Assembly (NCBI GenBank): GCA_002269645.1
Contig: NIVC01001125.1
Span: forward strand, 1 to 26,701
Direction of reading: 5' to 3'
Length of the DNA: 26,701 nt
Source of the DNA: Macrostomum lignano
Taxonomy: Eukaryota
The notes below the pieces were generated by a model. That model was not told the DNA's origin. It worked only from the letters and a program-made list of their open reading frames with translations, and ran no database searches. The position numbers and the translations under genes are program-made. Positions within the stretch are counted from its first letter, which is position 1; every line of letters starts with the position of its first letter. Shown piece after piece: positions 6,442 to 26,497 of this stretch.

Positions 6442-6668
6442 TCACGTAACTTTCCAATGCTCCAACGGCAGAGACTCCAGACGCCTGAACGTGGCGCGAA
6501 TTCGCAGCAGAACCACAATGCCCAGGATGAAGCACAGGCCAGACTGGATGTAGTACCCATCCACTAGGGTGATGCAGGACGACTCAGACTCCAGGCTTGG
6601 GGTGCTGCACGACTTGATTGATATGTAGTCAACCACGAATAGCAGGAAAGTGACTGGAGCGCTGCCGG
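6442..6668 (-). CDS. SLC33A1: Acetyl-CoA transporter 1 (AT-1), last exon
   Basis: Acceptor tttcccctcag|CC; the phase-1 join gives TNL-A-GSAPVTFLLFVVDY...DGYYIQSGLCFILG, matching AT-1 NLGGNWP...DGYY; TGA at 6444-6442. Confidence 0.9.
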
Positions 6669-6819
6669 CTGAGGGGAAATATTTATTAACAATAGTTATG
6701 TATCTGCATAAAGCTTAAGCATTATTGTTCAAGAAATGTCTTATAAGGAAAAATAAGAAATAGAAAAGACTTCTGCTTGGATGAATTTTTGCTAAGGGAG
6801 GGATAATCAGTAGGTGGAC

Positions 6820-7395
6820 AACTCGGTTGCTAGGGATAGATTGATCGGTTACTGGGGCAAATAGTTGGATTGCTATGGATAGATATCTCGGTTGCTAGGG
6901 GGAGATACCACGGTTGCTAAGGGTAGATAACTTAATTGCTAGGCTTAGATAGTTCGGTAATTCGGTTGCTATGGGGTAGATACGAGCGTAAGCTTGGTTG
7001 CTAGGGCAAACAGTTGGGTTGGGTTGCTATAAAATTGGTATATCTATGGCTAGACAGCTCGGTTGGTAGGGGTAGATAGCTCGGTTGCTATCGATATATA
7101 GCTCGGTTGCTATGGATATATAGCTCGGTTGCTATGGATATATAGCTCGGTTGCTATGGATATATAGCTCGGTTGCTATGGATATATATAGCTCGGTTGC
7201 TATGGATATATAGCTCGGTTGCTATGGATATATAGCTCGGTTGCTATGGATATATAACTCGGTTGCTAGGGCGTAGTTAACTCAGTTGCTTGGGATTGAT
7301 AGCTCGGTTGCTAGGGTAGATAGCTATAGGTTGCTAGGAGTGGATAGCTCGGTTGCTAGGGCTAGACAGCTCGGTTGCTAAGGCTAGATAGCTTA
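6820..7395. repeat. ~20-bp GGTTGCT-family minisatellite (copy 3) in the last SLC33A1 intron
   Basis: Near-perfect TATATAGCTCGGTTGCTATGGA units at about 7080-7265 with degenerate flanks. Confidence 0.93.
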
Positions 7396-7486
7396 GGTAA
7401 GTGGGTTGGCTAAAATTGGTATATCTATAAATTTAGAACTCAAGAAGATTCCAATAAAATCAGAATCCAACATTCGACAGTCTCAC

Positions 7487-8117
7487 CTAGATTAGTAACG
7501 GTATTAAGCAGAGTCATATAAGTGCCGCCAACATTCGGATCGGACACTTTAGCGTGGAAAGCCATCTGAGACACGAACATGGCGTACATGAACACCTGAT
7601 GGGCCAGATAGGCAACGGTCACTAGCAGGAAATAGTGCCAAGGATAGCTGGCATCGTGGGCAGATTTAAACCGAGGCGTTATCCAAACTAAGCCGGCAAA
7701 CAGCAGGCCCAACAGCAGCCTGGGCAGGGCACTCTTTGTGTACAAAGACAATGGCCGATTGCCAACGTGTCTACTTAGCAGCACAGGCAGAACCAGTTGA
7801 AACGGCGTGACAACAACGCCTAAAAGTGCCAGACGTTCTTTCGGCACACCGGCTTCGATGAGTTTCAATCCGGTCATGCCGTCGGCGGCAGCGAAAGCCG
7901 ATTTCAACAGGCACAGGCAGAACAGGTACAGCAGGACTGGCCGCAGGCGCATGACCTTGGCTAGGATGGCATAGGTCTCCCTAACACCGAGATTGTCGTT
8001 ATCAACTTCCGAGCTGCTGTTACTGCTGCTAGTTGATTCTTCCCGACGGAATAGCAGGCAAAATGTGGTGCCAAGGAACACTAGGCCCCAGAAACGGAGG
8101 AAACCCGACAGGCTCAC
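7487..8117 (-). CDS. SLC33A1: Acetyl-CoA transporter 1, internal exon
   Basis: Acceptor cacacgcag|GTG; donor G|GTGAGA; encodes GLKLIEAGVPKERLALL and SQMAFHAKVSDPNVGGTYMTLLNTVTNL, both diagnostic AT-1 motifs. Confidence 0.95.
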
Positions 8118-8179
8118 CTGCGTGTGTGCAGTTTGGAGTCATACCGATATTTTATAGTTGGTATAAGCCGCTTTTAGCT

Positions 8180-8665
8180 ACGAGACTCTTAGAATGACTG
8201 TTTTGTATGAGCATCCTACAATGACCATTTTGTATGAGTCTTTTACAATGAGCGTCATGCATGATCCTCTTACAATGACCGTTTTGCATGAGCTCCTTGC
8301 AATGACCATTTCATATGAGTCTCTTAGAATGACGGTTTTACATGAGCTTTTGACAATGACCGTTTTATATGAGTCTTTTACAATGACCGACATGCACGAT
8401 CCTCTTAGCTCATACAATGATTTTTTTCTATGAGCTTCCTTAAATGACAGTTTTAATATGAGCCTCTTACAATAACCGTTTTGCATGAGCTCCTGGCAAT
8501 GACCCTTTTACATGAGCCTTTTACAATGACTGTCATGCATGATCCTCTTAGCTCGTAAGTCGTAAATGACATTTTTATATGATTCTCTGACAATGACGCT
8601 TGTTATGAAGATATGAGCCTTTTTTAGAAATGACTGTTTTGTGTGAGCCAGTTGCAATGAGAATT
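8180..8665. repeat. Degenerate ~30-bp minisatellite (TTGCATGAGCTCCTTACAATGACCGTT-like) in an SLC33A1 intron
   Basis: Repeated ATGAG...TTACAATGAC with a period of about 30. Confidence 0.88.
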
Positions 8666-8708
8666 TTGCACCTTTCCAATGAGTCTATTAAAAAAAGCGA
8701 TGACTCAC

Positions 8709-9161
8709 CAGACCAACAGGCTCAGGCCTGCTCCGCAGCCAGGTGTTGCAAAAGTCGGCCGACTCCAACGCCAGGAACAGCACGTAGGCAATGAAATAGC
8801 CGGCAGTCTGACCAACCGAGTTGCAACCGGATGCCCAAGCAACATTGCGCCTGCTCAGCATAGTCAGAGCCCAGCCGTCAACAGCAATGTCCTGCGTTGC
8901 GGCCAGGAATGTTAGGGAGAAAAATCCCGCCGCCAGAGGCAGAACTCGAACCGGCCCGGGCGGGTTCTCGCCCAACAGCCAGTCCGTGTAGCTGGCCAAT
9001 GTGGTCATAGCGGCCGCTAGGCCGAACTGCACCGGTATTAACCAGGACTTCCGGCGACCAAATCGAGCCGAGTAGATCGAATCCACCAGCGGTGCCCACA
9101 GTAGTTTGAGCGAGAATGGCCAGAATACGAAGGAAAATGTACCCTGAGCTGTGTAGCTCAC
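8709..9161 (-). CDS. SLC33A1: Acetyl-CoA transporter 1, internal exon
   Basis: Acceptor ccgcccag|GTG; donor CTG|GTGAGT; 453 nt, phase 0/0; encodes FSFVFWPFSLKLLWAPLVDS...GRRKSW...ATQDIAVDGWALTMLS. Confidence 0.96.
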
Positions 9162-9351
9162 CTGGGCGGCGTGCGGTTATGGGGGTTATTTGGCAAGAAA
9201 GTGTCATTGGATGTTAAAATGCTAAACATACCTGGCCAAAACCTTATCACGCTCAAAGCAATGGGGTCTAGTGGAGAGATTGAACAAACAAATAAAGTCT
9301 ATAATCACGCGTTTAGTAGACAAATGATCACATTCATTGGGATCTTATTAT

Positions 9352-9923
9352 TCCGGACAGAAAGTGTGAAGTCGTGAAGACTCTCTGGGCAGAAAGTGTG
9401 AAGTCGTGAAGACTCTGGGCAGAAAGTGTGAAGTCGTGAAGACTCTGGGCAGAAAGTGTGAAGTCGTGAAGACTCTGGGCAGAAAGTGTGAAGTCGTGAA
9501 GACTCTGGGCAGAAAGTGTGAAGTCGTGAAGACTCTGGGCAGAAAGTGTGAAGTCGTGAAGACTCTGGGCAGAAAGTGTGAAGTCGTGAAGACTCTGGGC
9601 AGAAAGTGTGAAGTCGTGAAGACTCTGGGCAGAAAGTGTGAAGTCGTGAAGACTCTGGGCAGAAAGTGTGAAGTCGTGAAGACTCTGGGCAGAAAGTGTG
9701 AAGTCGTGAAGACTGGGCAGAAAGTGTGAAGTCGTGAAGACTCGGGCAGAAAGTGTGAAGTCGTGAAGACTCTGGGCAGAAAGTGTGAAGTCGTGAAGAC
9801 TCTGGGCAGAAAGTGTGAAGTCGTGAAGACTCTGGGCAGAAAGTGTGAAGTCGTGAAGACTCCGGGCACAAAGTGTGAAGTCGTGAAGGCTCCGGACAGA
9901 AAGTGTGAAGTCGTGAAGACTCA
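9352..9923. repeat. Near-perfect 30-bp minisatellite GACTCTGGGCAGAAAGTGTGAAGTCGTGAA, about 19 copies
   Basis: Identical consecutive lines at 9421-9700 (two units per 60 nt). Confidence 0.98.

Positions 9924-9924
<1 letters not shown>

Positions 9925-9960
<36 letters not shown>
9925..9960. repeat. (GA)n microsatellite
   Basis: About 18 GA units abutting the 30-bp array. Confidence 0.95.
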
Positions 9961-10049
9961 TTGTGAAGGTGCAGTGTAGGGCTGATCACTGGGGCAACTT
10001 AGATCGCGAGAACCAGGATGATCTTGGTGAGAATCCGCAACTGCCTCAC

Positions 10050-10172: not shown

Positions 10173-10243
10173 CTGAGCAGACAAGTCCCCATGCCAGCGG
10201 GGCCGCCTTCCACGCTCGGCTGATGAGGATTCGAGTTTTTCAC

Positions 10244-10516
10244 CGGCGAACGAGCCTGCCGTGCCTTCTTGAGCAGTTGAGCAGTTGACGAAGCGGCTTC
10301 GGCTTCTTCAGCTTCTGGCGATGTAGAAGTAGTGGATCCGCTGGAGTTGTCGGCCTCTTCAATATCGTTATCGTCTGTGAGATCTCCGCTAGTGTTGAGA
10401 GGCACTTGTGAGGGAATTTCTATGTCCAAGCTGAGTCCTTCCACTCGCTGTTGCTGCCTGCTGCTTGACCGGCTGTTGCCGGCGACACGACGCTGGCGGG
10501 TGGCTGGGGATGGCAT
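10244..10516 (-). CDS. SLC33A1: Probable N-terminal cytosolic tail of SLC33A1 (ATG at 10516)
   Basis: MPSPATRQRR resembles the AT-1 N-terminus (MSPT...RQRR). Joining to the TM1 frame needs a 71-nt intron (10243-10173) or an indel. The resulting ~568 aa fits the family size. Confidence 0.6.
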
Positions 10517-10529
10517 GCAAGGGAGTCAG

Positions 10530-11213
10530 GGGGGGGGCGGAATTGAGTTTAGGCGGGCGAAATCGAGTGTAAGGGGGGGGGCGGAATCGAGTCTAAGGGG
10601 GCGGAATCGAGTGTAGGGGGAGGGGCGGAATCGAGTGTAAGGGGGGCGGAATCGAGTGTAAGGGGGGCGGAATCGAGTGTAAGGGGGGGGCGGAATCGAG
10701 TGTAAGGGGGGCGGAATCGAGTGTAAGGGGGGAGGAATCGAGTGTAAGGGGGGAGGAATCGAGTGTTAGGGGGCGGAATCGAGTGTAAGGGGGGCGGAAT
10801 CGAGTGTTAGGGGCGGAATCGAGTGTAAGGGGGCGGAATCGAGTGTAAGGGGCGAGGAATCGAGTGTAAGGGGGGAGGAATCGAGTGTAAGGGGGGAGGA
10901 ATCGAGTGTTAGGGGGCGGAATCGAGTGTTAGGGGGCGGAATCGAGTGTAAGGGGGCGGAATCGAGTGTTAGGGGGCGGAATCGAGTGTAAGGGGGGCGG
11001 AATCGAGTGTAAGGGGGGGCGGAATCGAGTGTAAGGGGGCGGAATCGAGTGTAAGGGGGGCGGAATCGAGTGTAAGGGGGCGTAATTGAGTGTAAGGGGG
11101 GCGGAATCGAGTGTTAGGGGGCGGAATCGAGTATAAGGGGGGCGGAATCGAGTGTAAGGGGGGCGTAATTGAGTGTAAGGGGGGCGGAATCGAGTGTTAG
11201 GGGGCGGAATCAG
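10530..11213. repeat. ~21-bp G-rich minisatellite GGGGGCGGAATCGAGTGTAAG, about 32 copies
   Basis: Direct tandem periodicity with variable G-run length. Confidence 0.97.
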
Positions 11214-11749
11214 GTGTGCGACACAGTCAATACTAATAGATAGTGACATTTTACTATGATAAAATTTCTTTTAAAACCAAAAGTAGCATAAAAAGCAAGT
11301 CTAACAACAAAGTATACAAACACGCCATAATCACTGACAAAATACAACTTTTATTTTTACTTACTCTTCACAAGCAAATCGAGTTTACATTTTGGCATTT
11401 GGAACACACCTTGATAAGATATTTATTGAGATAAGAATTTAAACATTTCTGAGCGGGATTAACACAATAATTTTAGTTCATTAAGCTAAAAACTCTTTCT
11501 TTGTAAGCCAGATTACGTAAGTAAAATAAATTTAAGCAGTAAAGAATCATTTTTTTCAGAGCGATCAAAACGCTTGCATTAGCTATATATAATAGTACAT
11601 CACAACAGGAATGATTGGCTTTAGACAAAGTACAAGAATGTTGGCGCAAAAGCGCAGCCAACATGAGTGAAATTTATATTACGCGATCTTAAGTGCGCAT
11701 AAGCCTAAAATTAATTGCGAAAATTTATGTAACTCGCGAGCGAACCGGA

Positions 11750-12150
11750 GAACGAACAAACTTTGCAAGTTCCTGCGAACTGAAGTACTAGCAAACTTTT
11801 CAAGCTCTCGCGAACTGAAGTACAAGCGAACTTTTCAAGTTCTCGCAAACTGAAGTACAAGCGAACTTTTCAAGTTCTCGCAAACTGAAGTACTATCAAA
11901 CTTTTCAAGTTCTCGCGAACTGAAGTACTAGCAAACTTTTCAAGTGCTCGCGAACTGAAGTACTAGCAAAATTTTCTACTTCTCGCGAACTCAAGTACTA
12001 GCGAACTTTTCAAGTTCTCGCGAACTGAAGTACTAGCAAACTTTTACTTTTCTAGTTCTCGCGAACTGAAGTACTAGCGAACTTTTCAAGTGCTCGCGAA
12101 CTGAAGTATTTTAGAACTTTAAAAAGTACGCACGAACTTAACAAGTGCGA
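11750..12150. repeat. 35-bp minisatellite AACTTTTCAAGTTCTCGCGAACTGAAGTACTAGCA
   Basis: Units start at 11899 and 11934; about 11 copies; internal palindromes TCGCGA and AGTACT. Confidence 0.93.
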
Positions 12151-12204
12151 ATGAAGTAGCCAAAAAGTTAAACAGTACATTAGAACCGAAGTACCGGCGT
12201 ACTA

Positions 12205-13262
12205 TTAAGGCATCTGGGTAACGCTGATACACTCGCGCAACAGTCGCGGTACGGATGCTTCGGTCAAGTCTCTGGGCTGTTTATAAAGTACGCGCCGACG
12301 AACGTCTTCGTAGGCGAAGGGCAGCCGCAGCACCCAAAGGTCGCCGGGGCCAAGCGGAATCGGCTCTGGATTGCCGGGCAAGAACACCGGAGCAGCCGAG
12401 ACGGACGTCGCGGCCGATTCGCCGCCGGTTTCGGCTACAGCTGGCGCCGATGAGTCGGGCGACGGGGCAGCGAATCGAACTCGCGGATTGAGCCGAATCC
12501 GGACTGGAGCTTGAGGCGCAGCCACCCAGACTCGCATTAGCTGAGCAAATGCGCCTTTGGATTTGTGACAATGACACGGTATAAATAGCGGCAGATCTTC
12601 GCTAAGCAGCCGTTGAACTCCCTCCTTAACCTGGGTAGCTTGCATCGCGCCGCGCATCATCTGGCCGGGACTCGATACAAAAAATCGGTGCCCAAACGGG
12701 CACTCGTGCTCGAAGCCGAACCAAGCTTTGGCTGTTGGCTCGCGTCGAGTGCTTCGATATTGAGATGATTGCTGTTGTTGCTGCTGTTGCTGTTGCCACA
12801 GTTTACTGGCTACAGGTACATTCCAGGGCAGCAGGTGATTAGAGCCGCTAGAGAAGCCCGGCTGTCCAATACCGTTAGCGTGGCTGTAGCTGTTGTAGCG
12901 GCCAACAGACAGCAGGCACCAGCTTTGGACCAACGGCAGATAGCGGCCGATCAGGTCCTCGGTCATCATTCCTTTTAATTGCCGGATTGACACCTCAGTG
13001 TTATTCGATGCTGATAGCCCAGTCTCTTTAGGCGATTCAAGCTTCAAGCATTGCCGTTGTTTCCGCTTTAGATCTGCTTCTTCTTCTAATAATAATTGCT
13101 CATCTTCATCGTAGTTGCTGTGCTCGACGGCTAATGCTAGGGGAGTCCTGCTAGGCAATGTGGCTGACGGCTGGTCCAGCTCGACATCGTCCAACTCTGG
13201 ACTGCGCAGCGGCGGCAGCAGGTCGCCACTGTTCGACAGCTCCTCCGTGTACTGTGGCTGGG
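12205..13262 (-). CDS. SMG8: SMG8 nonsense-mediated decay factor, last exon (acceptor position inferred)
   Basis: WFGFEHECPFGHRFF...SEDLPLF...AQLMRVWVAAP...LWVLRLPFAY matches the SMG8 C-terminal domain; TAA at 12207-12205; phase-1 acceptor aacccgcag|CC. Confidence 0.9.
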
Positions 13263-13800
13263 CTGCGGGTTTATGGTGGGCGTGGCTGGGGGTTTATGGT
13301 GGGCGTGGCTGGGGGTTTATGGTGGATGTGGCTGGGGGTTTATGGTGGGTGTGGCTGGGGGCTTATGGTGGGTGTGGCTGGGAGTTTATGGTGGGTGTGG
13401 CTGGGGGTTTATGGTGGGTGTGGCTGGGGGTTTATGGTGGGTGTGGCTGCGGGTTTATGGTGGGTGTGGCTGCAGGTTTATGGTGGGTGTGGCTGCGGGT
13501 TTATGGTGGGTGTGGCTGCGGGTTTATGGTGGGTGTGGCTGGGGGTTTATGGTGGGTGTGGCTGGTTTATGGTGGGTGTGGCTGGGGGCTTATGGTGGGT
13601 GTGGCTGGGGGTTTATGGTGGGTGTGGCTGGGGGTTTATGGTGGATGTGGCTGCGGGTTTATGGTGGGTGTGGCTGGGGGTTTATGGTGGGTGTGGCTGG
13701 TTTATGGTGGGTGTGGCTGCAGTTTTATGGTGGGTGTGGCTGCGGGTTTATGGTGGGTGTGGCTGCGGGTTTATGGTGGGTGTGGCTGAGGGTTTGTGGG
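13256..13800. repeat. 23-bp minisatellite GTGGCTGGGGGTTTATGGTGGGT (with 20-bp deletion variants)
   Basis: About 24 tandem units; the source of the MVGVAGG-type ORFs. Confidence 0.97.
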
Positions 13801-13811
13801 TAAGATTAGCT

Positions 13812-14052
13812 GTCTGATGATTTAATATTTGGTGTCTGATGGGGTGAGAATAGATTTCTGATGGGTGAGATTAGATTTTCCATGGGGTGAGATTAGATGT
13901 CTGATGGGATGATATTAGATTTCTAATGGGGTGAGATTAGACGTCTGATGGGGTGAGATTAGACGTCTGATGGGGTGAGATTAGGTGTCTAGTAAGGTGA
14001 GATTTAATGCCTAAATAACGAGGGAGATTAAGCATCTAGTGGGTGAGATTCA
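13812..14052. repeat. Degenerate 22-bp minisatellite GATGGGGTGAGATTAGACGTCT
   Basis: Units start at 13926 and 13948. Confidence 0.88.
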
Positions 14053-14123
14053 TGCTTTAGACAAAGCTAACAGTGATTACAATTAGAGCTTTAATGTGAG
14101 CTAGGTCGATACAATATACACAC

Positions 14124-14641
14124 TTTTATCCTCGGAGCCTCTCCGCTGATAGACTGGCAGAGGCACAGGCTGGTGCTGGCCGCAGCAGCTGTCAATCAGA
14201 CGGCTATAAAAGTGCACATTGGCCTCCTCCCAGTTGAAAGGATCTGGTCGGCTTTCCAACAGTCGGCCGCACGAGCAGGCGGCCCGCATCGATGTGTAAG
14301 CTGACGAATGCGGCATCGCCGGCAGCTGCTGCTGCTGATCAGCCGAGGTGCCGGGCAGGCTGTGCCGCTCGTTAACGCACGGATGCGAGGTGACGCTCAG
14401 GGCTTCGCACATCTGCCGGCCGGACAGCCAGACGCTGTTGCAGCGAGCCTCCAATTCAGCCAGGTATTTATCGGCTGCCGGGCCTCGGGCATTGTCTAGG
14501 AACACCTGCTGGGCCTTGCGAATGCGCTCGGTGTGCACCCGATGGCTGTAGTGGGCTGGCAGGCCCTCGCGATAGACGGACTCGGCCAGTGGCAGGGCGC
14601 TGGCGCACCGGGTCTCCGAGAATTTGCGCACAATGTCGCAC
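14124..14641 (-). CDS. SMG8: SMG8 exon 4
   Basis: Acceptor cacttccag|G; encodes KFSETRCASALPLA...ARGPA...W.SGRQMCE..S.T.H.C...CSCGR...RPDPF...AN, conserved in SMG8; donor A|GTGTGT inferred. Confidence 0.9.
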
Positions 14642-14687
14642 CTGGAAGTGAAGGGGAGATTAAGGGTGATTAAGCGTTCTTCAGACG

Positions 14688-15048
14688 CCCCAGCAACTGA
14701 GGATCTAAGAGGTTAAAGCTGACCAAGCAACTGAGGATCTGGGAGGCTGACCCAGCTACTGACACTCTGGGAGGCTGGCCCAGCAACTGAGGATCTGGGA
14801 GGCTGGCCCAGCTACTGAGGATCTGGGAGGCTGACCCAGCAACTGAGGATCTGGGAGGCTGACCCAGCAACTGAGGATCTGGGAGGCTGGCCCAGCAACT
14901 GAGGATCTGGGAGGCTGACCCAGCAACTGAGGATCTGGGAGGCTGGCCCAGCAACTGAGGATCTGGGAGGCTGACCCAGCAACTGAGGATCTGGGAGGCT
15001 GGTCCAGCAACTGAGGATCTGGGAGGCTGACCCAGCAACTGAGGATCG
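14688..15048. repeat. 28-bp minisatellite GGGAGGCTGACCCAGCAACTGAGGATCT
   Basis: Units start at 14881, 14909 and 14937. Confidence 0.96.
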
Positions 15049-15111
15049 GTAGTGACACAAGCAACTCCAGAGGGTGAATAAACACATACTCATGACCATT
15101 ATCCAACTCAC

Positions 15112-15509
15112 CTAGCCTTGAACTCGTTCATAACCCTCTGCACGCCTGGGTCTAGATCCGTAAGCAGCAGTTTGTGCAGCTTGTGGCAGACTTTAAACCA
15201 GCTCTTGGCCGAGACCAGATCCAGCGGGCCGCCGCCAACGCCGCCCTCAGCCTCCGCCTGGTTCATGTGCCGTTCGAGGAATCTGGCGAATTCCCGATTG
15301 TACGAACCGCCCGTCAGCGACTGCATGAATTCATTATCCAACAGTTGATCGTCTGTTAAGTCTACGGGGTCGTCCAGCTCTAGCAGAGACTGAAAGACGC
15401 CAGACGGCGAGGCTGGTGCAGGCGGGCTGACGCAGCAGAATCCGCCGTCTGGTAGACGGCACAAGTTGCCGGCCTCGGGGCCCGTGATGAGTTTTGCGCG
15501 GCGGAATAT
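15112..15509 (-). CDS. SMG8: SMG8 exon 3
   Basis: Acceptor cgcccgcag|ATA; the join CQIYQ|IFRRAKLIT matches SMG8 EDQIYRIFRKSRVLT; donor AG|GTGAGT is phase 2 and matches the next exon. Confidence 0.9.
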
Positions 15510-15559
15510 CTGCGGGCGTGGAGGCAGTGCAGGGGCGGGTTATGGGTACCTGCTGGGGC

Positions 15560-16365
15560 GGGTTCTAATTGGGGTGGATTCTAATTGGGGTGGGTTCTAA
15601 TTAGGGCGGATTCTAATTGGGGTGGATTCTAATTGGGGTGGGTTCTAATTGGGGTGGGTTCTAATTGGGGTGGATTCTAATTGGGGTGGGTTCTAATTGG
15701 GGTGGGTTCTAATTGGGGTGGGTTCTAATTGGGGTGGATTCTAATTGGGGTGGGTTCTAATTGGAGTGGATTCTAATTGGGGTGGGTTCTAATTAGGGCG
15801 GATTCTAATTGGGGTGGATTCTAATTGGGGTGGGTTCTAATTGGGGTGGGTTCTAATTGGGTAGGTTTTAACTGGGGTGGGTTCTAATTGGGGTGGGTTC
15901 TAATTAGGGCGGATTCTAATTGGGGTGGGTTCTAATTGGGGTGGATTCTAATTGGGGTGGGTTCTAATTAGGGCGGATTCTAATTGGGGTGGATTCTAAT
16001 TGGGGTGGGTTCTAATTGGGGTGGGTTCTAATTGGGTAGGTTTTAACTGGGGTGGGTTCTAATTGGGGTGGGTTCTAATTAGGGCGGATTCTAATTGGGG
16101 TGGGTTCTAATTGGAGTGGATTCTAATTGGGGTGGATTCTAATTGGGGTAGGTTCTAACTGGGGTGGGTTCTAATTGGGGTGGGTTCTAATTGGGTAGGT
16201 TTTAACTGGGGTGGGTTCTTATTGGGGTGGGTTCTAATTGGGGTGGGTTCTAATTGGGGTGAATTCTAATTAGGGCGGATTCTAATTGGGGTGGGTTCTA
16301 ATTGTGGTGTGTTTTAAATTGGGGTGAAATTGGGGTGGATTCTAACTGGGTAGGCTCTAAATAGG
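15560..16365. repeat. 16-bp G-rich minisatellite TTCTAATTGGGGTGGG, about 48 copies
   Basis: Direct 16-bp periodicity with recurring TTAGGGCGGA and GGGTAGGTTTTAAC variant units. Confidence 0.97.
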
Positions 16366-16420
16366 ACTAAATCAGCTAGCGACTGAATCAGAGTGTCGCT
16401 TTAAATAAAAAATGCTCCAC

Positions 16421-16663
16421 CTGATAAATCTGGCACTGCAAGCTATCAGCCAGAGCTCGTTGGTGACCGCCGTCAATTAGCTGCTTAGTAAGATTGCCCG
16501 GACTCAGTTGGAAATGGAATAGCACAGCCGGGCATGAGGTCCGACCATTCAGAGTCCAATCTCGGGGCACAGGGAACGAGCGATAGGCCTGGCACAGTTG
16601 GCCCAGCAACTGCTGACGCAGCTGAGACACCAGCTGTAGGGTTCGAGTTACTGCCGGATTCAC
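16421..16663 (-). CDS. SMG8: SMG8 exon 2
   Basis: Acceptor cttcgcag|GTG; donor CAG|GTGGAG; 243 nt; PVPRDWTLNGRTSCPAVLFHFQL matches SMG8 PVGKDWKLNCRPCPPRLLFLFQL. Confidence 0.9.
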
Positions 16664-16715
16664 CTGCGAAGTTGCAAAGGGATAATTGAGTAATTAATAC
16701 GAGCTAATTAACTGG

Positions 16716-17342
16716 ACTTCCGGAGTTAAAAAAGATCCCATCGATCCCACTGAACCGGAAATATCGAATTTTCCTGGACTTTGAAGATCCCATCGATCCC
16801 ACTGAACCGGAAGTATCGAATTTTCCATAACTTTGAAAATCCCAACGATCCCACTGAACCGGAAGCATCGAATTTCCCTGAACTTTGAAGATCCCATCGA
16901 TCCCACTGAACCGGAAGTATCGAATTTTCCATAACTTTGAAAATCCCATCGATCCCACTGAACCGGAAGTATTGAATTTCAATAAACTTTGAAGATCCCA
17001 TCGATCCCACTGAACCGGAAGTATCGAATTTTCCATAACTTTGAAAATCCCATCGATCCCACTGAACCGGAAGTATTGAATTTCCCTGAACTTTGAAGAT
17101 CCCATCGATCCCACTGAACCGGAAGCATCGAATTTCCCTGAACTTTGAAGATCCCATCGATCCCACTGAACCGGAAGTATCGAATTTTCCATAACTTTGA
17201 AAATCCCATCGATCCCACTGAACCGGAAGTATTGAATTTCCCTGAACTTTGAAGATCCCATCGATCCCACTGAACCGGAAGTATCGAATTTTCCATAACT
17301 TTGAAAATCCCATCGATCCCACCGAACCGGAAGTTGGAAAAT
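16716..17342. repeat. 52-bp minisatellite TCCCACTGAACCGGAAGTATCGAATTTTCCATAACTTTGAAAATCCCATCGA, about 12 copies
   Basis: Units start at 16901 and 16953; two roughly alternating variants (CATAAC..AAAAT and CTGAAC..AAGAT). Confidence 0.96.
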
Positions 17343-17351
17343 CCAACCAAC

Positions 17352-17906
17352 CTGAGTCCCAATACAGTTGAACACAACAACATGCGACACGGAGAACAGG
17401 TATAGCAAAGCTCTGATGTTATCAAAATCGGCCGCAGTCAGCATAGCGGCAACATTAGGCGTGTCCGGATTAAGATCTCGGACAAAAGCGGCGTACAGGT
17501 GAGCTAAATGAGCCGGGTCATTCGGTCCGGTTAAGCTTAGAAACACGGCCCGCTTTTCTGGGCTGTAGAATCCGTGCAGCCTGACCAGCTGCTGCTGATC
17601 AGATGCCGACTTATCGGCGGTACTATCGACATCGTCCGCCACTGTAGCACCGTCGCTTTCAAAACCATAGCCTAGCAACGGCGGTTGAAACGCCGGCCTA
17701 TCTAATAACTGCAGTTCCAATTGTAGAGTTTTGCTGGGACACAACCTGGGATCGGACCGGCCAACAAAAGCCACTACGCGAATTCGCGTATCGCGTCGGG
17801 ATAAACGATTGAAGTCGAAGTTCGGGGGCAAGGGGAACCAGCCGGGTTGGCAGGCTGGTTGAGACCTCTGCTGATGCTGCTCATGGTGATGATGCTGATA
17901 GTGCCT
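17352..17906 (-). CDS. SMG8: SMG8 first recognisable exon (5' end uncertain, no in-frame ATG)
   Basis: IRVVAFVGRS...LLYLFSVSHVVV matches the SMG8 N-terminal G-fold; donor CAG|GTTGGT; frame open back to a TGA at 17924-17922. Confidence 0.8.
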
Positions 17907-17984
17907 CTGAGTATCCAGAAATCAATGCATCAGCGATTTAAAAAAAGCATATGAAAAGACTTAAGACATTAAGGAATTGAAAGG

Positions 17985-18510
17985 AGTGGCCTAGGAGTGT
18001 CTTAGGAGTGACCCACCAGAGAAACAGGTGTCTTAGGAGTGATCCACTTGAGGAATCAGTGGCTTAGGAGTGACCCTCTTGAGGAATCAGTGGCTTGGGA
18101 GTGACTCACTTGAGGAATCAGTGGCTTAGGAGTGACCCACTTGAGGAATCAGTGGCTTAGGAGTGACTCATTTGAGGAATCAGTGGCTTAGGAGTGACCC
18201 GCTTGAGGAATCAGTGGCTTAGGAGTGACCCGCTTGAGGAATCAGTGGCTTAGGAGTGACCCGCTTGAGGAATCAGTGGCTTGGGAGTGACCCGCTTGAG
18301 GAATCAGTGGCTTAGGAGTGACCCGCTTGAGGAATCAGTGGCTTGGGAGTGACTCACTTGAGGAATCAGTGGCTTGGGAGTGACTCACTTGAGGAATCAG
18401 TGGCTTGGGAGTGACTCACTTGAGGAATCAGTGGCTTAGGAGTGACACACTTGAGGAATCAGTGGCTTAGGAGTGACCCACTAGATACTGATGTGTTAGC
18501 TAATCGTAGG
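17985..18510. repeat. 31-bp minisatellite GGCTTAGGAGTGACCCACTTGAGGAATCAGT
   Basis: Units start at 18061 and 18092; about 15 copies. Confidence 0.96.
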
Positions 18511-19004
18511 AGTGACCTGTATGCATACGTATAAACTGATTATCTAAGTAGCAAGACATAACTAAAAATAAGCGAGAACTAGCAAAAAATAAATTGTGTG
18601 CCTTTATTTCAAACATTATCAGTTTTAGTAGTTTATACAGGTAAGCAATTAAAAAATAAGGACATGATAACTACGCAGCATATTATTTAATACAAAATTA
18701 TAGTTAGCTACTATGCACAATAAGCAATAACCTGAAAATTTAACCGAGATTAAAACAGGCATAACAGATAAAATGTATAGATGTACAAATATGCACACAT
18801 GTCACGCTTTTAAACAATAAAGACATTTTATAGTGCACGCAGGCAATAAAATGCACTGTAACAAAGGACAAATACAACAAAACTGTGTTAACTGTCTTTG
18901 TTAAACCTGTTTTATGAATGGATAGCACTTTTAAGTAAATATCAAGTACATTTGAATGACGGTAAAGGAATGAGGGCTGTATAACGGTAGATAAGAGTAG
19001 ATTA

Positions 19005-19378
19005 TTAGGGTAGCTTAAGGGTAGATGATTAGGGTAGCTTAAGGGTAGATGATTTGGGTAGCTTAAAGGTAGATTATTTGGGTAGCTTAAGGGTAGATGA
19101 TTTGGGTAGCTTAAGGGTAGATGATTTGGGTAGCTTAACGGTAGATGATTAGGGTAGGTTAAGGGTAGATGATTTGGGTAGCTTAAGGGTAGATGATTAG
19201 GGTAGCTTAAGGGTAGATGATTTGGGTAGCTTAAGGGTAGATGATTTGGGTAGCTTAACGGTAGATGATTAGGGTAGGTTAAGGGTAGATGATTAGGGTA
19301 GCTTAAGGGTAGATGATTTGGGTAGCTTAACGGTAGATTATTAGGGTAGATTAACGGTAGAGGGTAGCTTAACCTCAA
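19005..19378. repeat. 24-bp minisatellite GGGTAGCTTAAGGGTAGATGATT(A/T)
   Basis: About 15 tandem units; the source of the LSYPNHLP ORF. Confidence 0.96.
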
Positions 19379-19902
19379 CGTTAGAGGATTAAGGCAGCTT
19401 AAAAGACAGAACTATTGCATCTGATCGATAGGTTAGAAAGGTAGATCGATAGGTTAGCATGAAAATTTATTAAAAAAACGGTAACTGCAAAGGTAGATAG
19501 GTAAATAGTGAATAAATTTTAGTGCATGCAGGTTTATTCTTACTCATATTTTCGTTTTATAGCATGAGTAAATGTTAAACTGACTGCTCAAAACTTGTCG
19601 TGCAAAGTACTCACATCTCGTGCCAAATACATAACTTCGTATATACATATAGCGACGGAATAGCAACATACTTAAAACACAAGTATTAAAGTATGCAGCA
19701 CTTTTTTGAACGCAACAACCTACAAGAGCATCGAATAATGTAGCATGATATGAAAAATGAAAATAACATATGAAAATAGACGAATTAAAATAGCTGCCAA
19801 TGCAGTGCTGATTGCTAGGACCAGATTAAAGTTACTTGAAAATTGACATCTTTTTACTTTATTTATTATTTGATTATTAGACAGACAGGGTTGATGGGCC
19901 AT

Positions 19903-20240
19903 TCTAGAGTGAGGTTGGAGGGCGGTTCCAGAGTGGGGTTGGAGGGCGGTTCTAGAGTGGGGTTGGAGGGCGGTTCTAGAGTGGGGTTGGAGGGCGGTTC
20001 TAGAGTGGGGTGGGATGGCGGTTCTAGAGTGGGGTTGGAGGGCGGTTCTAGAGTGGGGTTGGAGGGCGGTTCTAGAGTGGGGTGGGATGGCGGTTCCAGA
20101 GTGGGGTTGGAGGGCGGTTCTAGAGTGGGGTTGGAGGGCGGTTCTAGAGTGGGGTTGGAGGGCGGTTCTAGAGTGGGGTTGGAGGGCGGTTCTAGAGTGG
20201 GGTTAGAGGGGATTCTAGAGTGAAGTTGGAGGGCGACTCT
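19903..20240. repeat. 24-bp minisatellite TCTAGAGTGGGGTTGGAGGGCGGT
   Basis: About 13 tandem units; the source of the GSRVGLEG ORFs. Confidence 0.96.
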
Positions 20241-20344
20241 AAAACAATTTTGATAGTTTAACATTAGTTTGAGATTAGTAAACAACATGAGTACATCTCT
20301 GCTTAGCTTAAATGGACAAATGACTAGCGTTAATTACATAAGAA

Positions 20345-22374: not shown

Positions 22375-22864
22375 ATGCTCTGGAAGCAGCAGCCGCAGCA
22401 GCAGCAGCAGTCTGGAATTGCCGAGATAATACAAGAAAGTCTACGCAAATCGTCTATACGCGGCCTGCCAAGAATACTAGGCGCCAAGTCTCGCCTCATG
22501 CGCGGCTTTTGGACAGCTACAGTGTTAATATTGTTCGCCTGTCTGGCGCAGAACATACACAACTTAGTTGACTCTTACAGACGAGCCGACACAATAATTA
22601 ATACAAAACAGTGGACGTCGCAGGATAGACAGTTTCCAACTGTGACCATTTGCAATTTAAACCCATTTTCAGCATCGAATCGATTGGTAAAACAGAGAGG
22701 CAGCCTGACTCCATCAGAGTATAGAGACAGAGTCATTCACATGACAAAAGAGGCCAATAGACGAGGACTTATTGACAAGGAAGAGATGGACTTATACCAG
22801 GACGAGCTGCTCAATCTTAAAGCGTACTACGACAACATCGATGTCTACTTGAAGAAGTACATGG
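22375..22864 (+). CDS. DEG/ENaC (ASIC/FaNaC-like) channel subunit, exon 1
   Basis: SSIRGLPRI...FW.....L (pre-TM1/TM1) and FPTVTICNLNPF signature; donor G|GTAAGC. Confidence 0.92.
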
Positions 22865-22958
22865 GTAAGCAATTGATGTTATTTCAACCTACATGCAAAG
22901 TTAGTTTGCTATGGACGCTCTTAGTGAAGACAATATTGTACAATCGCACTTCACACAG

Positions 22959-23333
22959 AAAGCTATCCGCTGATCCTGTCAAAGAGTTGCAAAATCTATT
23001 ATCGCAAGGGCAACGTACGCAAAAGTCGAAAATGTGACAGCATCGAGAGAAGCTACGTATTTGACTATACCAACTGCTACTCTGTAAATGTCTACAGCAC
23101 AAAAGACGAACTAGTTGAGAAAGTTGTTATTAGCACTCTGACACACTCTGAGGACGAAGGCGTCAAGTGCAGTCGCTGCATAGTGGATAATCCGCAGTCT
23201 CTGAGACAAGGAGTTATAATGCATCTGCATCCGCACAATCAATACCCGCTGTACATTAAAGAGGGTCTGTACATAGCGCCTGGCACGCAAAATATTATTC
23301 AGGTGAAGCAACGAAAGTACAATCTTATCAAAG
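22959..23333 (+). CDS. DEG/ENaC channel subunit, exon 2
   Basis: Acceptor ttcacacag|AA (phase 1); open frame with TNCYS and GVIMHLHPHNQYP..KEGLYIAPG; donor G|GTAAGT. Confidence 0.9.
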
Positions 23334-23487
23334 GTAAGTTTGCAAGCTGCACCGATAATTTTAATGCTACTATGTATTGCCACAACATTGCTCTATCGCA
23401 TCAGTATAAAAAAAGTAAATTTGAAGAGACTCGTTGAATCCCTGCTATTTTTGTGATTTTACAATAACAAAATCTTCACTCTTACAG

Positions 23488-23926
23488 ACTGCAGCACGGA
23501 CCACCCAACCTGGGTGCATTTCTACGTTAACGACGCTAAAAAAAGTAGTCACCATACTAGAGAACTGTGCAGCACTATAGCTAAACACGCGGCGGTGAAA
23601 CGAGCTTGTAATTGTTCAATCGAAGCGTTTCCACATTTATCAGCTCGTAAAAATCAATACGATTCCTGCTACCAACAGAATCTTAGCTCTCCAGTTATCA
23701 ATACTAAACTATTAGACTGCGTAGCGGATATAGAAGGTCGGCATCATCAAACATGTGGATCAACAGCAGCTACGGAGGCCGACACAATTTCTGGGAAAAA
23801 CTGTGCGCGACCTTGTAACACCGAGGATTTCAGCGTTGCGCACACTTCAACACTAGGCGCAACAAAAGGCAGCGCGTTGGATATCTATCGGCACTATATT
23901 AGAGGTGTGGTTAATATACCTAGCAA
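23488..23926 (+). CDS. DEG/ENaC channel subunit, exon 3 (Cys-rich thumb)
   Basis: Acceptor ctcttacag|AC; encodes C...ACNC...C...C...C...CARPCNTEDF; donor AA|GTGAGT. Confidence 0.9.
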
Positions 23927-24029
23927 GTGAGTATTCAAGTGAAACTTGTTTTTTTAGTAATTATATAGACCTTCATAAGTGCAATGCAGAAATTTACAAA
24001 TTTGTAGACAGAATTTGTCTTTCATTCAC

Positions 24030-24570
24030 ACAGCAGTCTCTCGATCTCTGCCTTCATTCAAACTGTAGACTCTGGACCTCTGCCTTCATTCAGACTAGTC
24101 TCAGGATCTCTGCCTTAATTCAGACTGTAGTCTTAAGATCTATGCCTTCATTCAGACTGTAGTCTCAGGATCTCTGCCTTCATTCAGACTGTAGTCTCAG
24201 GATCTCTGCCTTCATTCAGACTGTAGTCTCAGGATCTCTGCCTTCATTCAGATTGTAGTCTCAGGATCTCTGCCTTCATTCAGACTGTAGTCTCAGGATC
24301 TCTACCTTCATTCAGACTGTAGTCTCAGGATCTCTGCCTTCATTCAGACTGTAGTCTCAGGATCTCTGCCTTCATTCAGACTGTAGTCTCAGGATCTCTG
24401 CCTTCATTCAGACTGTAGTCTTAAGATCTATGCCTTCATTCAGACTGTATTCTCTGGACTATGCCTTCAATAAGACTGTAGTCTCTGGATCTGTGCCTTC
24501 ATTCAGACTGTAGTCTCTGGATCTCTGCCTTCATTCAGACTGTAGTCTCTAGAGCTCTGCCTTCACTCAG
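24030..24570. repeat. 32-bp minisatellite TCTCTGCCTTCATTCAGACTGTAGTCTCAGGA in channel intron 3
   Basis: About 16 units, each containing the small inverted repeat AGACT-GT-AGTCT. Confidence 0.96.
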
Positions 24571-24699
24571 ATAGCATAAAAAATCAGTAGATTAGGGACT
24601 AGGTTAACTGTTAACACGATTTCCTAAAATATTTCCTGAAGACAGATTTTTTCAATGCCACTACATTTAGCGTCTTCATGACACGCATCTCTATACCAG

Positions 24700-25180
24700 A
24701 TTCCGAAGCATCTACGACGCAGCGCTGCTCGCCCGCGAGGCAAACAACGACACATTAGCCATGCAGCTCGTATCGAAGACGGATTATCTCGAGCGCAATT
24801 TTGCCACAATGGTACTGATGTACATACCAAATCATGCCAAAGTGTACACAGAAAGCTATTTATTAGATTCGGCTTCGTTTGTTAGTCAAGTCGGCGGAGC
24901 GATGGCGCTATTCAGCGGCATAACACTAATTTGCATTGCCGAAGTGTTCGAAGTTATTTACGATTTAATAGCTTACGCCTATTGGCGACATAAACTTGGT
25001 AGGCAAGGTGGAGTTCAAACTTCAATTACTACTAACGCGAGTAGTGCAACAACAGCAAGATCAGCAACTGGTAATAATGTTAGAATCATTCACGCCAATT
25101 TTAACTGTCACAATTCTACTAGCAATAATAACAGATTGTTGCGAGTGCCAGTTCAATTTAACAGATTGGACGAATTATAG
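24700..25180 (+). CDS. DEG/ENaC channel subunit, exon 4 (TM2 and C-terminus)
   Basis: Acceptor ctctataccag|A (phase 2); encodes FVSQVGGAMALFSGITLICIAEVFE (TM2); TAG at 25178-25180. The four exons total 1785 nt = 594 aa plus stop. Confidence 0.92.
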
Positions 25181-25305
25181 TTATTGTTTTTCTTTTCGCC
25201 GCGAAACGTCTCAAGCACCTGAGTCTGCATCGAATCTTGATGAATTAAAGCACACTTCACCTCTCTACACTATTATTGATTAGTTCCACATTGTTCAACC
25301 GTTTT

Positions 25306-25311
25306 AATAAA
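25306..25311 (+). terminator. Probable polyadenylation signal of the channel gene
   Basis: AATAAA 125 nt after the stop, followed by T-rich sequence. Confidence 0.6.
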
Positions 25312-25682
25312 ACTTCTTTAAAACATTACTTTATGTACTAACTTTTTGAATTTGTTAAACTGATGCATTCGAATTTGATACTCGTATTGTTTAAGACACT
25401 GTAGCTGTTTTCATCAAAAAATAATAAAATTTGTGTCCTATTGAACGTTACTATTTGCAGTTGTATACCGCGTTTCCTTGAAACTACGTTTTTTTACTCA
25501 CGATATATTATTATAATACTATAAATGCCTTACATGCCTAACTACGAGCTATTTAACACGAAACGAATGCAAATACTTGATTCTGATTTCATGCTAGTAC
25601 ATCATAGCTAATCTAAGTTTTCACACTTTTTCTGATAGTGCTTACCATAATCCATAACAACGGTGCACGAGTGTAGTGTAGT

Positions 25683-25835
25683 GGGAAAGAAGAGAGGGGG
25701 GAGGGAGGAAGAGGGGAAGAGGAGAGGAAAGCGGAGAGGGAAGGTGGAGAGGGGACGAAGATGGGGAGAGGGAAGAAGATGAGAGGGGAGGAAGAAGGGG
25801 AGACGGGGGGAAGGCGGAGAGGAAAGAATGGTGGA
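25683..25835. repeat. GA-rich polypurine low-complexity tract (pyrimidine-rich in the BRPF pre-mRNA)
   Basis: Mostly G/A on the + strand, starting about 20 nt into the intron after the donor at 25856. Confidence 0.85.
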
Positions 25836-25856
25836 GACAGAAGGCCAAACACTCAC

Positions 25857-26497
25857 CCGATAAACTCGGTGAAAACGGTGTCACCAACTCCGCCGGCAGA
25901 GTCGCGCGCCTTCAGCATCGCTGTGACTTTCCTCCTCTTTGAATAGTCGGTTATTAGTCGCGTCAGCGGATGAAATGGGCGAGGTTGCGGCCAGCGGCGG
26001 CGGCGGCAGAGCAACTGCTGCCAAGTCGGCCAGTACGCCTCGGCTGATGACGTTGCGCCGTAGTCGGAGTTGACGTTGTCGACGCAGAATCCTGAGATAT
26101 CGATCGGCGAGTCAACGGCCTTGTCGGAGACGCAGTCGGCGAGGATTGTCGAATTATTGGTCGGCGCCAATTGCCACCGATGCAGGCCAGTCTCCGAATC
26201 GTAATCGGCCGCTGATTCGGCTGCCAGAGCGTCGCTAAACAGAGACTGCGATCTGGATTGCAGCCGATTAGCGGCCCGACAATAGATACTGTCTTTGCGA
26301 TTGAATGCGTGGCAGTTAGCCAGCATTAAATCAAAGTCTGAGCGATATTCGGCCACGCTGGCGTACTGATTGCACTCGATTTTTGATAGCATAGTTGAAA
26401 AATCCATTGGCGTTTGATGGCCTCGCGATAGGCCGGCAAATCGACTGGTTCGGCACAATATGCGCTGAGTGTCCAGCTCGGTTAGGGCCGAGTGAAG
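25857..26497 (-). CDS. BRPF1: BRPF/peregrin family protein, bromodomain exon (contains apparent indels; upstream exons lie outside the window)
   Basis: PMDFSTM..KIE...Y......DFDLM..NC..FN.KDSIY.RAA.RL...DSETGLH matches the BRPF bromodomain and the following DFETGMH motif. Donor GG|GTGAGT is in phase with the PWWP exon. Acceptor ccgccgcag|CTT is inferred. Confidence 0.85.

Follow-up and report, generated by a model that had tools for sequence, protein, structure and literature searches.

Do three genes lying head to tail on a contig of the flatworm Macrostomum lignano, BRPF, SMG8 and SLC33A1, derive their mRNAs from a common precursor resolved by spliced-leader (SL) trans-splicing, as an earlier note on this DNA had proposed? 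The window analysed is the entire contig NIVC01001125.1 of the Mlig_3_7 assembly (GCA_002269645.1; 26,701 bp). Acceptors, reading frames, the missing genomic start codon and the spacer geometry were read directly from the sequence and the public annotation. Together, they suggest that the SMG8 and SLC33A1 mRNAs are made by SL trans-splicing within a gene cluster (probability of this reading, roughly 0.6) whose co-transcription is likely but unproven.

M. lignano has a single SL of 35 nt that ends in ATG (…TTGCATG); 30% of its genes are trans-spliced and about 15% are assigned to operons (PMC8629364), so that the earlier appeal to SL-resolved operons in flatworms holds for this very species. 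Some M. lignano precursor transcripts contain several trans-splice sites (PMC5730564), and an SL-supplied AUG is an established feature of flatworms (Cheng 2006, as cited in PMC9851317; also PMC10468722).

Genes on the contig

Pfam matches and the NCBI gene list place the 3′ part of BRPF, SMG8 and SLC33A1 in this order, head to tail, on the minus strand. The coding models of all three were reconstructed until identical to the NCBI products (PAA71949 for BRPF, PAA71948 for SMG8 and PAA71947 for SLC33A1).

25857..26497, minus strand: bromodomain exon of BRPF (peregrin-like); Pfam bromodomain 25853-26596, rebuilt model
22375..25180, plus strand: DEG/ENaC (amiloride-sensitive channel) gene nested in a BRPF intron; Pfam PF00858
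20345..20888, minus strand: last exon of BRPF, with PWWP domain (Pfam PWWP 20345-20824) and stop codon 20347-20345; exon model
12205..17894, minus strand: SMG8, BOX15_Mlig033894g1, 919 aa; exact spliced mapping of P0127, Pfam PF10220
6442..10513, minus strand: SLC33A1 (acetyl-CoA transporter), BOX15_Mlig017016g1; Pfam Acatn PF13000, rebuilt models

The minus-strand, head-to-tail order given in the earlier note is thus borne out by Pfam and by the exact models, as are the gene identities; BRPF, counted there as one of three genes, is present only as its 3′ third. The gaps, put at ~2.4 kb and ~1.7 kb, measure 2,450 and 1,691 nt. No opposite-strand gene was found in either spacer, the sole plus-strand gene found being the one within the BRPF intron. 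Since same-strand placement of three genes has a chance probability of p = 0.25, the arrangement by itself is not significant.

Indel errors of the contig fall in SLC33A1, within the G run 10190-10187, and at two places in BRPF, about 26455 and 26410. The best matches of BRPF outside Macrostomum are BRPF1/3/peregrin, and NCBI annotates the fragment as 26410-25857 + 20888-20345 (365 aa, BOX15_Mlig027344g1). This "partial" CDS begins at 26410 because the two 1-nt indels compensate each other; the true start of the bromodomain exon is 26497, behind the acceptor ccgcag/CTT (AG at 26499-26498), and the ML2 model P0141 has ..TQRIFAEPVDLPAYREAIKRPMDF.. where the frame of the contig is shifted. The last exon is 99.8% identical to its copy in the homeologous contig L002.

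The 5-kb intron between the two BRPF exons (25856-20889) hosts the DEG/ENaC gene, which the earlier description of the locus omitted and which does not appear in the NCBI gene list for NIVC01001125.1. Its ORF pieces (22375-23037, 23514-23930 and 24761-25180) match positions 3-109, 290-376 and 399-454 of the PF00858 profile.

The 5′ ends of SMG8 and SLC33A1

SMG8 is made up of exons 17894-17352, 16663-16421, 15509-15112, 14641-14124 and 13262-12205, with a minisatellite called by TRF in all four introns; the Smg8_Smg9 domain (PF10220) is matched at 12205-13194, 14101-14631 and 16704-17831. Two short motifs mark the putative 5′ ends of the downstream genes:

17895..17896, minus strand: AG of the candidate SMG8 trans-splice acceptor, ctatcag/CATCAT; the "partial" NCBI CDS starts at the next base
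10514..10520, minus strand: TTGCATG heptamer ending exactly where the SLC33A1 ORF begins, the same 7 nt as at the end of the M. lignano SL

The SMG8 CDS is annotated as "partial" in all three assembly copies and in each begins one base past the AG, which pins the acceptor suspected in the earlier note to 17896-17895; as that note had seen, no upstream exon is evident, none being called in the annotation of any copy. The frame is open only from 17921, and an SL-derived AUG placed at the mRNA body start, 17894, is in frame (M-HHHHEQHQQ...). No in-frame genomic ATG precedes MLTAADF, about 170 residues in, and none lies ahead of the conserved N-terminal domain; the ML2 gene models start at this internal MLTAADF, a genomic ATG being absent. 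The surroundings of the acceptor have the same sequence in three contigs, indicating that an out-of-frame ATG at 17884 is real. These features strongly suggest that the SMG8 mRNA is SL-trans-spliced and that the SL supplies its start codon.

SLC33A1 consists of exons 10513-10050, 9161-8709, 8117-7487 and 6668-6442, with minisatellites in every intron, Acatn (PF13000) matches at 7440-8117 and 8688-9161, and an AATAAA at 6348, 94 nt past the stop. In the NCBI model the first exon is 10160-10050, while the open frame extends to 10513: a 1-nt deletion in the G run breaks the frame, hence the 473-aa product starting from ATG 10160. The other copies have "partial" products of 586-590 aa. The N-terminal extension, roughly 125 codons, has no stop and would be read in frame from an AUG at the junction, between 10514 and 10513. 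All long copies are annotated as "partial" and start 3-15 nt beyond this junction; those that carry the ATG also start past it.

The sequence at the junction is TTGCATG in four of the five Mlig_3_7 copies and TTCGCTG in L002. For both homeologs, the ML2-derived models have L-P-S-Q and no ATG at this place; the Ser-Gln pair implies that the acceptor is CAG. Because RNA-seq was used to polish Mlig_3_7 (PMC5730564), the ATG is probably an imprint of SL-bearing reads. Turning TTCGCAG into TTGCATG takes one deletion and one insertion, a type of edit typical of Pilon; given the ATG, the chance that all 7 nt match the SL 3′ end is 1 in 256. Upstream of the heptamer, the resemblance to the SL is not significant. 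Presumably, then, Pilon polishing wrote TTGCATG over a genomic ..TTCGCAG acceptor, and the genome itself probably lacks the ATG at 10516. We infer the junction itself from the SL-like heptamer, the protein models of the older assembly and the frame. In all likelihood, if somewhat less surely than for SMG8, the SLC33A1 mRNA is likewise SL-trans-spliced and receives its start codon from the SL. The earlier note had given this 5′ end a candidate acceptor; the acceptor is masked in the contig, and the abutting ATG had been misread as genomic.

TTGCATG could instead be genuine DNA, a piece of the SL that entered the SLC33A1 acceptor in a single subgenome, perhaps through conversion by the 5′ end of a reverse-transcribed mRNA. 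Dinoflagellate genomes are known to contain SL relics, and the heptamer is found in four contigs. Against this, the ML2 models, from the same line and from an assembly reportedly built on the same PacBio data as Mlig_3_7, have Ser-Gln and not Cys-Met in both homeologs. The RNA-seq polishing (PMC5730564), the single deletion and insertion needed and the end of the match at 7 nt, with no significant SL similarity upstream, also make this origin very unlikely. If it were correct, SLC33A1 would have gained its own genomic ATG and been freed from dependence on the SL, its L002 homeolog staying dependent, and the locus would offer a snapshot of a trans-spliced gene turning conventional.

A slightly less probable reading, likewise very unlikely, dispenses with trans-splicing: ATG 10516 would be genomic, with a transcription start in or near the adjacent 21-bp array, and SMG8 would take its ATG from an unannotated 5′ exon. 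The ATG in four of five Mlig_3_7 copies speaks for it, as do the fuzzy ends of the annotated SLC33A1 transcripts, whose starts vary among identical copies (+3 and +6) and hence do not reflect a called trans-splice peak. This reading leaves unexplained why the ATG is absent from L002 and from the ML2-derived models of both homeologs, why ATG-bearing copies are still "partial" and begin after it, and why the 7 nt are those of the SL 3′ end (1 in 256); nor does it fit an SMG8 CDS that is "partial" exactly past the AG in three copies, with no upstream exon called. A point against the trans-splicing reading is that neither of the two acceptors exactly matches the enriched [T/C]TNCAG motif.

Spacers and proposed co-transcription

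Operon spacers in M. lignano are inflated by repeats. Their repeat-adjusted mode lies near 100 bp, a threshold of 1 kb is applied, and the distribution of spacings is bimodal, with a short "operon" mode and a long mode (PMC8629364). The two spacers were measured after subtraction of TRF repeats only.

17895..20344, minus strand: BRPF-SMG8 spacer, 2,450 nt, from the BRPF stop to the SMG8 acceptor
10514..12204, minus strand: SMG8-SLC33A1 spacer, 1,691 nt, from the SMG8 stop to the SLC33A1 junction

The SMG8-SLC33A1 spacer contains 1,032 nt of arrays and 659 nt of unique DNA, laid out as a 35-bp array (12108-11757), 545 nt of unique sequence and a 21-bp array (11211-10532). Pyrimidines make up 75% of the latter on the transcribed strand; it contains a single AG and stops 18 nt short of the junction. 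AATAAA occurs twice in the 545-nt stretch (11427-11422 and 11355-11350). Between the second and the 21-bp array lie ~120-140 nt of unique DNA, against the ~100 nt of the earlier estimate. The distance between the genes is thus below 1 kb whether counted from the stop (659 nt) or from the AATAAA signals (~140-210 nt).

In the BRPF-SMG8 spacer, three arrays (20235-19888, 24 bp; 19361-18992, 24 bp; 18482-17996, 31 bp) account for 1,205 nt; the remaining 1,245 nt, counted from the stop codon and including the BRPF 3′UTR, are unique DNA. Candidate polyA signals lie at 19867-19858, 19538, 19471, 18691 and 18608-18603, and the unique distance depends on the site assumed: ~1,090 nt (near 19850), ~700 nt (near 19460) or ~200 nt (near 18590). 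Its standing against the 1-kb criterion is borderline, the value falling below 1 kb only with a distal polyA signal. The AATAAA signals that the earlier note had placed at ~11351-11427 and ~18604 were found, each followed by GT/T-rich sequence; of its description of the gaps as mostly minisatellite or upstream 3′ region, the repeats account for about half of each gap. In L002 the corresponding spacers have 1,244 nt of unique DNA with 2,134 nt of arrays (BRPF-SMG8) and 668 nt with much shorter arrays of 354 nt (SMG8-SLC33A1). Unique length is thus conserved between homeologs, and the arrays vary up to about threefold.

We propose that SMG8 and SLC33A1 at least, and possibly BRPF too, would be transcribed as a single precursor from a promoter upstream of BRPF, off contig NIVC01001125.1. 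Individual mRNAs would be released from it as 3′ ends are cleaved at the AATAAA signals and the 35-nt SL is added at the AG, 17896-17895 for SMG8 and what is now 10515-10514 for SLC33A1, and both proteins would start at the AUG that ends the SL. On this view, hypervariable minisatellites would have swollen short intercistronic regions into the long gaps.

Alternatively, the genes could be three independent transcription units with their own promoters in the gaps, outrons and monocistronic SL trans-splicing, their order being coincidental in a gene-dense patch. The published annotation assigns them to three transcriptional-unit clusters, Mlig027344 (BRPF), Mlig033894 (SMG8) and Mlig017016 (SLC33A1); under the naming rule of PMC5730564, the different names mean that the RNA-seq assembly did not join the genes. 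However, transcriptional units tend to split in repeat-rich operon spacers (PMC8629364). About 60% of M. lignano trans-spliced genes lie outside operons (PMC8629364), and regulatory elements are proximal, working promoter fragments being shorter than 2 kb (PMC5730564). The gaps offer 545-1,245 nt of unique DNA, room enough for a proximal promoter (545 nt between SMG8 and SLC33A1, roughly 500 + 500 nt between BRPF and SMG8), and the shared strand is expected by chance at p = 0.25. What argues against independent units is the repeat-adjusted distance of ~140-210 nt between the SMG8 polyA signals and the SLC33A1 junction, which falls in the short "operon" mode and not in the long one. We give independence an appreciable probability, well short of even.

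Co-transcription of SMG8 and SLC33A1 appears more likely than not. That of BRPF and SMG8 can be proposed only tentatively, and a single operon holding all three genes is somewhat more doubtful. The SL-resolved operon of the earlier note thus kept its SL signatures, strong but indirect, and the SMG8-SLC33A1 distance; the annotated split into three units and the borderline BRPF-SMG8 spacing count against it.

Comparison with known systems

The locus resembles the predicted operons of M. lignano (Ustyantsev & Berezikov 2021, PMC8629364; Wudarski et al. 2017, PMC5730564) in species and single 35-nt SL, in adjoining same-strand conserved housekeeping genes whose downstream starts lie at an AG acceptor, and in spacers dominated by tandem repeats that shrink to a few hundred nt after repeat subtraction. 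It differs from them in that the transcriptional-unit names do not link the genes and in a BRPF-SMG8 spacer that falls below the 1-kb limit only with a distal polyA site.

With the SL2-type operons of C. elegans it would share upstream 3′ end formation, a short intercistronic region and downstream SL addition, a resemblance in way of working and not one of membership: M. lignano has one SL and no specialised SL2, and the raw spacers are 1.7-2.4 kb here versus about 100 nt. Intercistronic distances in Schistosoma mansoni have a median of 99 bp and a mean of 233 bp (PMC12582326). Parasitic flatworm operon candidates are similar in having an SL that ends in AUG, in being mostly two-gene operons and in their "with spacer" type; unlike theirs, the raw spacers here exceed the threshold of ≤300 bp, and the locus passes only after repeat subtraction (PMC12582326).

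A further parallel is provided by the "slORFs", whose AUG is donated by the SL (Cheng et al. 2006 JBC, as cited in PMC9851317). As there, nothing interrupts the ORF up to the acceptor, its frame agrees with that of the terminal AUG of the SL, and SMG8 has no genomic in-frame AUG before the conserved sequence. SLC33A1 shows the same features in L002 and in the ML2 models, TTGCATG apparently masking them in this contig. According to the same citing source, "slORFs" were demonstrated experimentally in Schistosoma, whereas the case made here is drawn from sequence and annotation alone. The kind of system is already known and its novelty is low; the locus is a credible but ordinary example of the published M. 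lignano pattern of SL-resolved, repeat-inflated operons.

Gene content and sequence quality of the locus

Three CDSs are annotated on contig NIVC01001125.1 of the M. lignano assembly GCA_002269645.1 (Mlig_3_7), and the models of all three were reconstructed exactly:

26410-20345, minus strand: BRPF fragment, 365 aa (BOX15_Mlig027344g1)
17894-12205, minus strand: SMG8, 919 aa, flagged "partial" (PAA71948.1, BOX15_Mlig033894g1)
10160-6442, minus strand: SLC33A1/Acatn, 473 aa (BOX15_Mlig017016g1)

Pfam analysis confirmed the gene identities and, together with the annotated CDSs, bore out the head-to-tail, minus-strand arrangement that the earlier note had read from the sequence. The top matches of the BRPF gene outside Macrostomum were BRPF/peregrin proteins; full-length M. 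lignano BRPF proteins were not among the matches of this search. A point absent from the earlier note is that just the 3′ third of BRPF is present on the contig. Gene order and strand are the same in the homeologous contigs L002 and L004. Taken by itself, the shared orientation is no proof, since three genes will share a strand by chance with p = 0.25. Contig P0001 was rejected as having no relation to the locus.

The 5-kb BRPF intron harbors an unannotated antisense gene of the DEG/ENaC type (amiloride-sensitive channel, PF00858; 22375-25180, plus strand), likewise overlooked in the earlier note. It consists of three ORF pieces; no piece was found for the middle of the profile (positions 110-290).

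The earlier note also missed indel errors of the contig in BRPF and SLC33A1. In the BRPF bromodomain exon, two compensating single-base indels (26410 and ~26455), relative to other copies and models, account for the start of the NCBI "partial" CDS at 26410. The SLC33A1 frame opening at the "ATG" at 10516 runs for 116 codons and then shifts, the window having GGGG (10190-10187) where the other SLC33A1 copies have GGGGG and read straight through. Since the frame is broken in the window alone, the annotated 473-aa product reflects either an indel artefact or a lesion specific to this copy. The single-base indels at 10187-10190, 26410 and ~26455 are likely residual long-read errors. The next accession (L005, NIVC01001126.1:1-15553) begins with a near-identical 21-bp array and an SLC33A1 gene devoid of the frameshift, and probably represents a haplotig or a duplicate located beside the window in a scaffold.

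A metagenome contig of 14 kb (L001, ENA ERZ25070786 ctg113905l) encodes an acetyl-CoA-transporter homolog of 365 aa at positions 816-1913; the gene has no introns, and its product shares 60% identity with the flatworm protein. Among the genes nearby are integrase-like (rve) and phospholipase A2 genes and faint Pox_A32-like ones; the contig may represent a virus or mobile element with a host-type transporter.

Tandem repeats make up 42% of the window, and almost all introns and spacers contain a minisatellite. A (GAGGA)n satellite of 3.1 kb (1-3163; GC skew ~+1) occupies the contig end and is probably the reason for the assembly break there. Related 18-22-bp repeats (..TAGCTCGGTTGCTAGGG..) form arrays at 3731-4253, 5692-5907, 6822-6958 and 7044-7393, downstream of SLC33A1 and within its last intron, and constitute a dispersed minisatellite family.

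The 5′ ends of SMG8 and SLC33A1

M. lignano has a single spliced leader (SL) of 35 nt, CGGTCTCTTACTGCGAAGACTCAATTTATTGCATG, which is added to transcripts of ~30% of its genes; ~15% of genes are assigned to operons (PMC8629364). SL-dependent start codons are well documented among flatworms (Cheng 2006, cited by PMC9851317; see also PMC10468722). An Rfam scan of the window was negative for RNA families, SL RNA genes included, and SL fragments of at least 8 nt were found neither in the window nor in L002 or L005. The locus tags and gene names of this locus did not appear in the searched supplements of published papers, and none of the clusters inspected contained M. lignano transcript contigs (Logan).

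The SMG8 frame is open from 17921 only. An ATG at 17884 lies in another frame, and the first in-frame ATG ("MLTAADF") lies ~170 residues in, well beyond the conserved N-terminal part of the Smg8_Smg9 domain. Assembly error as the source of this mismatch was ruled out: three independent contigs are identical around the 5′ end, hence the frame is real. In all three NCBI CDSs, each flagged "partial", the first base directly follows an AG (ctatcag/CATCAT; AG at 17896-17895, first base at 17894). The gene models from the older ML2 assembly are without a genomic ATG and start at the internal Met (MLTAADF). Joining the SL between 17895 and 17894 places its AUG in frame (M-HHHHEQHQQ). Judged from sequence, this pattern is the signature expected of an SL-dependent start codon.

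At SLC33A1, the "ATG" at 10516 closes a heptamer, TTGCATG (10520-10514, minus strand), that is identical to the final 7 nt of the SL. Four copies in the newer assembly, Mlig_3_7, carry it, and a fifth differs, the flanks being identical:

10514-10520, minus strand, window: TTGCATG
16910-16916, L004: TTGCATG
1447-1453, L005: TTGCATG
4417-4423, L006 (a further SLC33A1 copy): TTGCATG
16143-16149, L002: TTCGCTG

In the other copies, the long SLC33A1 products (586-590 aa) each carry the "partial" flag and begin 3-15 nt after the ATG position. UniProt models derived from ML2 have Leu-Pro-Ser-Gln at the site in both homeologs, corresponding to TCN-CAR; the underlying DNA would most simply read ..TTCGCAG/CCATCC, with an AG acceptor. 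One deletion and one insertion convert TTCGCAG to TTGCATG. ML2 was reportedly built from the same PacBio data and not RNA-polished. Mlig_3_7 was polished using Pilon with Illumina DNA and RNA-seq reads (PMC5730564). The SLC33A1 acceptor was probably overwritten by SL-bearing RNA-seq reads at this step, generating a false genomic ATG and erasing the AG. The ATG at the junction would then be the SL's own AUG, and the true N-terminus would consist of the SL-AUG followed by CCA TCC CCA… (MPSPATRQRR…). The SLC33A1 ATG abutting the 21-bp array, previously taken as genomic, is suspect: it coincides with the SL 3′ end, and L002 and the ML2 models differ there. A search for a longer SL relic upstream of the junction gave a GACTC match that was not significant.

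The 21-bp array itself (10532-11211, 680 nt, minus strand) stops 18 nt short of the SLC33A1 reading frame. On the transcribed strand, pyrimidines make up 75% of it and AG occurs only once; in effect, the acceptor is preceded by a very long pyrimidine tract that is poor in AG.

Spacers and putative co-transcription

The gap between the BRPF stop and SMG8 measures 2,450 nt, 1,205 nt of which are TRF arrays; that between the SMG8 stop and SLC33A1 measures 1,691 nt, with 1,032 nt of arrays. These values match the ~2.4 kb and 1.7 kb of the earlier note, whose AATAAA sites with U/GU-rich sequence were also recovered: AATAAA followed by GT/T-rich sequence occurs at 11427-11422, 11355-11350 and 18608-18603. 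Further AATAAA signals lie at 19867-19858. Unique DNA is constant in length between homeologs in each spacer (659/668 nt for SMG8-SLC33A1, 1,245/1,244 nt for BRPF-SMG8). A different minisatellite (unit 16-52 bp) is found in each SMG8 and SLC33A1 intron and in both spacers; across these introns and spacers, arrays vary up to ~threefold in length, while unique DNA keeps its length and is ~98-99% identical (window 6442-20345 versus L002).

Among adjacent trans-spliced genes of M. lignano, the repeat-subtracted intergenic distance is bimodal with a main peak near 100 bp, and 1 kb of such distance is the operon threshold; according to the same study, repeats lengthen the operon spacers, where transcriptional units built from RNA-seq are prone to break (PMC8629364). 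Precursor transcripts with several trans-splice sites exist, and genes were cut at SL and polyA peaks in the genome annotation (PMC5730564). Constant unique spacers with variable arrays fit this picture of short, repeat-inflated intercistronic regions. Just ~140-210 nt of unique DNA separate the SMG8 polyA signals from the SLC33A1 junction, within the operon mode.

In favor of an operon, three conserved genes lie side by side on one strand, and both SMG8 and SLC33A1 appear to be trans-spliced. Against it, the locus tags represent three different transcriptional-unit clusters (Mlig027344, Mlig033894, Mlig017016), BRPF and SMG8 fall within the 1-kb limit only if a distal polyA site is used, each gap could accommodate a proximal promoter, and most trans-spliced M. 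lignano genes lie outside operons (PMC8629364). Also on this side, the homeologs gave no hint of constrained promoter-like spacer DNA, a comparison with no resolving power as divergence is ~1-2% in exons, introns and spacers alike. On balance, we put the probability that SMG8 and SLC33A1 are co-transcribed at roughly 0.6. Co-transcription of BRPF with SMG8 is somewhat doubtful, and a single operon comprising all three genes slightly more so.

Significance and relation to known systems

The locus is a plausible further instance of a known system and adds little new biology, because SL trans-splicing, start codons donated by the SL and operons inflated by repeats have already been published genome-wide for M. 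lignano. Its practical value lies in annotation: the "partial" flags on SMG8 and on the long forms of SLC33A1 would stem only from the SL supplying their start codon. What reaches beyond this locus is the apparent imprint of the SL in a publicly available assembly. If this reading is true, polishing wrote SL bases over trans-splice acceptors in Mlig_3_7, creating false genomic ATGs at the expense of AG acceptors.

As a putative operon, the locus works like those published for M. lignano. Its likeness to the SL2-type operons of C. elegans is looser, and it lacks a specialised SL2. Looser too is its likeness to the operon candidates of parasitic flatworms, whose raw-distance threshold (300 bp or less) its spacers exceed; the median intercistronic distance in S. 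mansoni is 99 bp (PMC12582326). On account of these two differences, the locus is classed solely with the putative operons of M. lignano.
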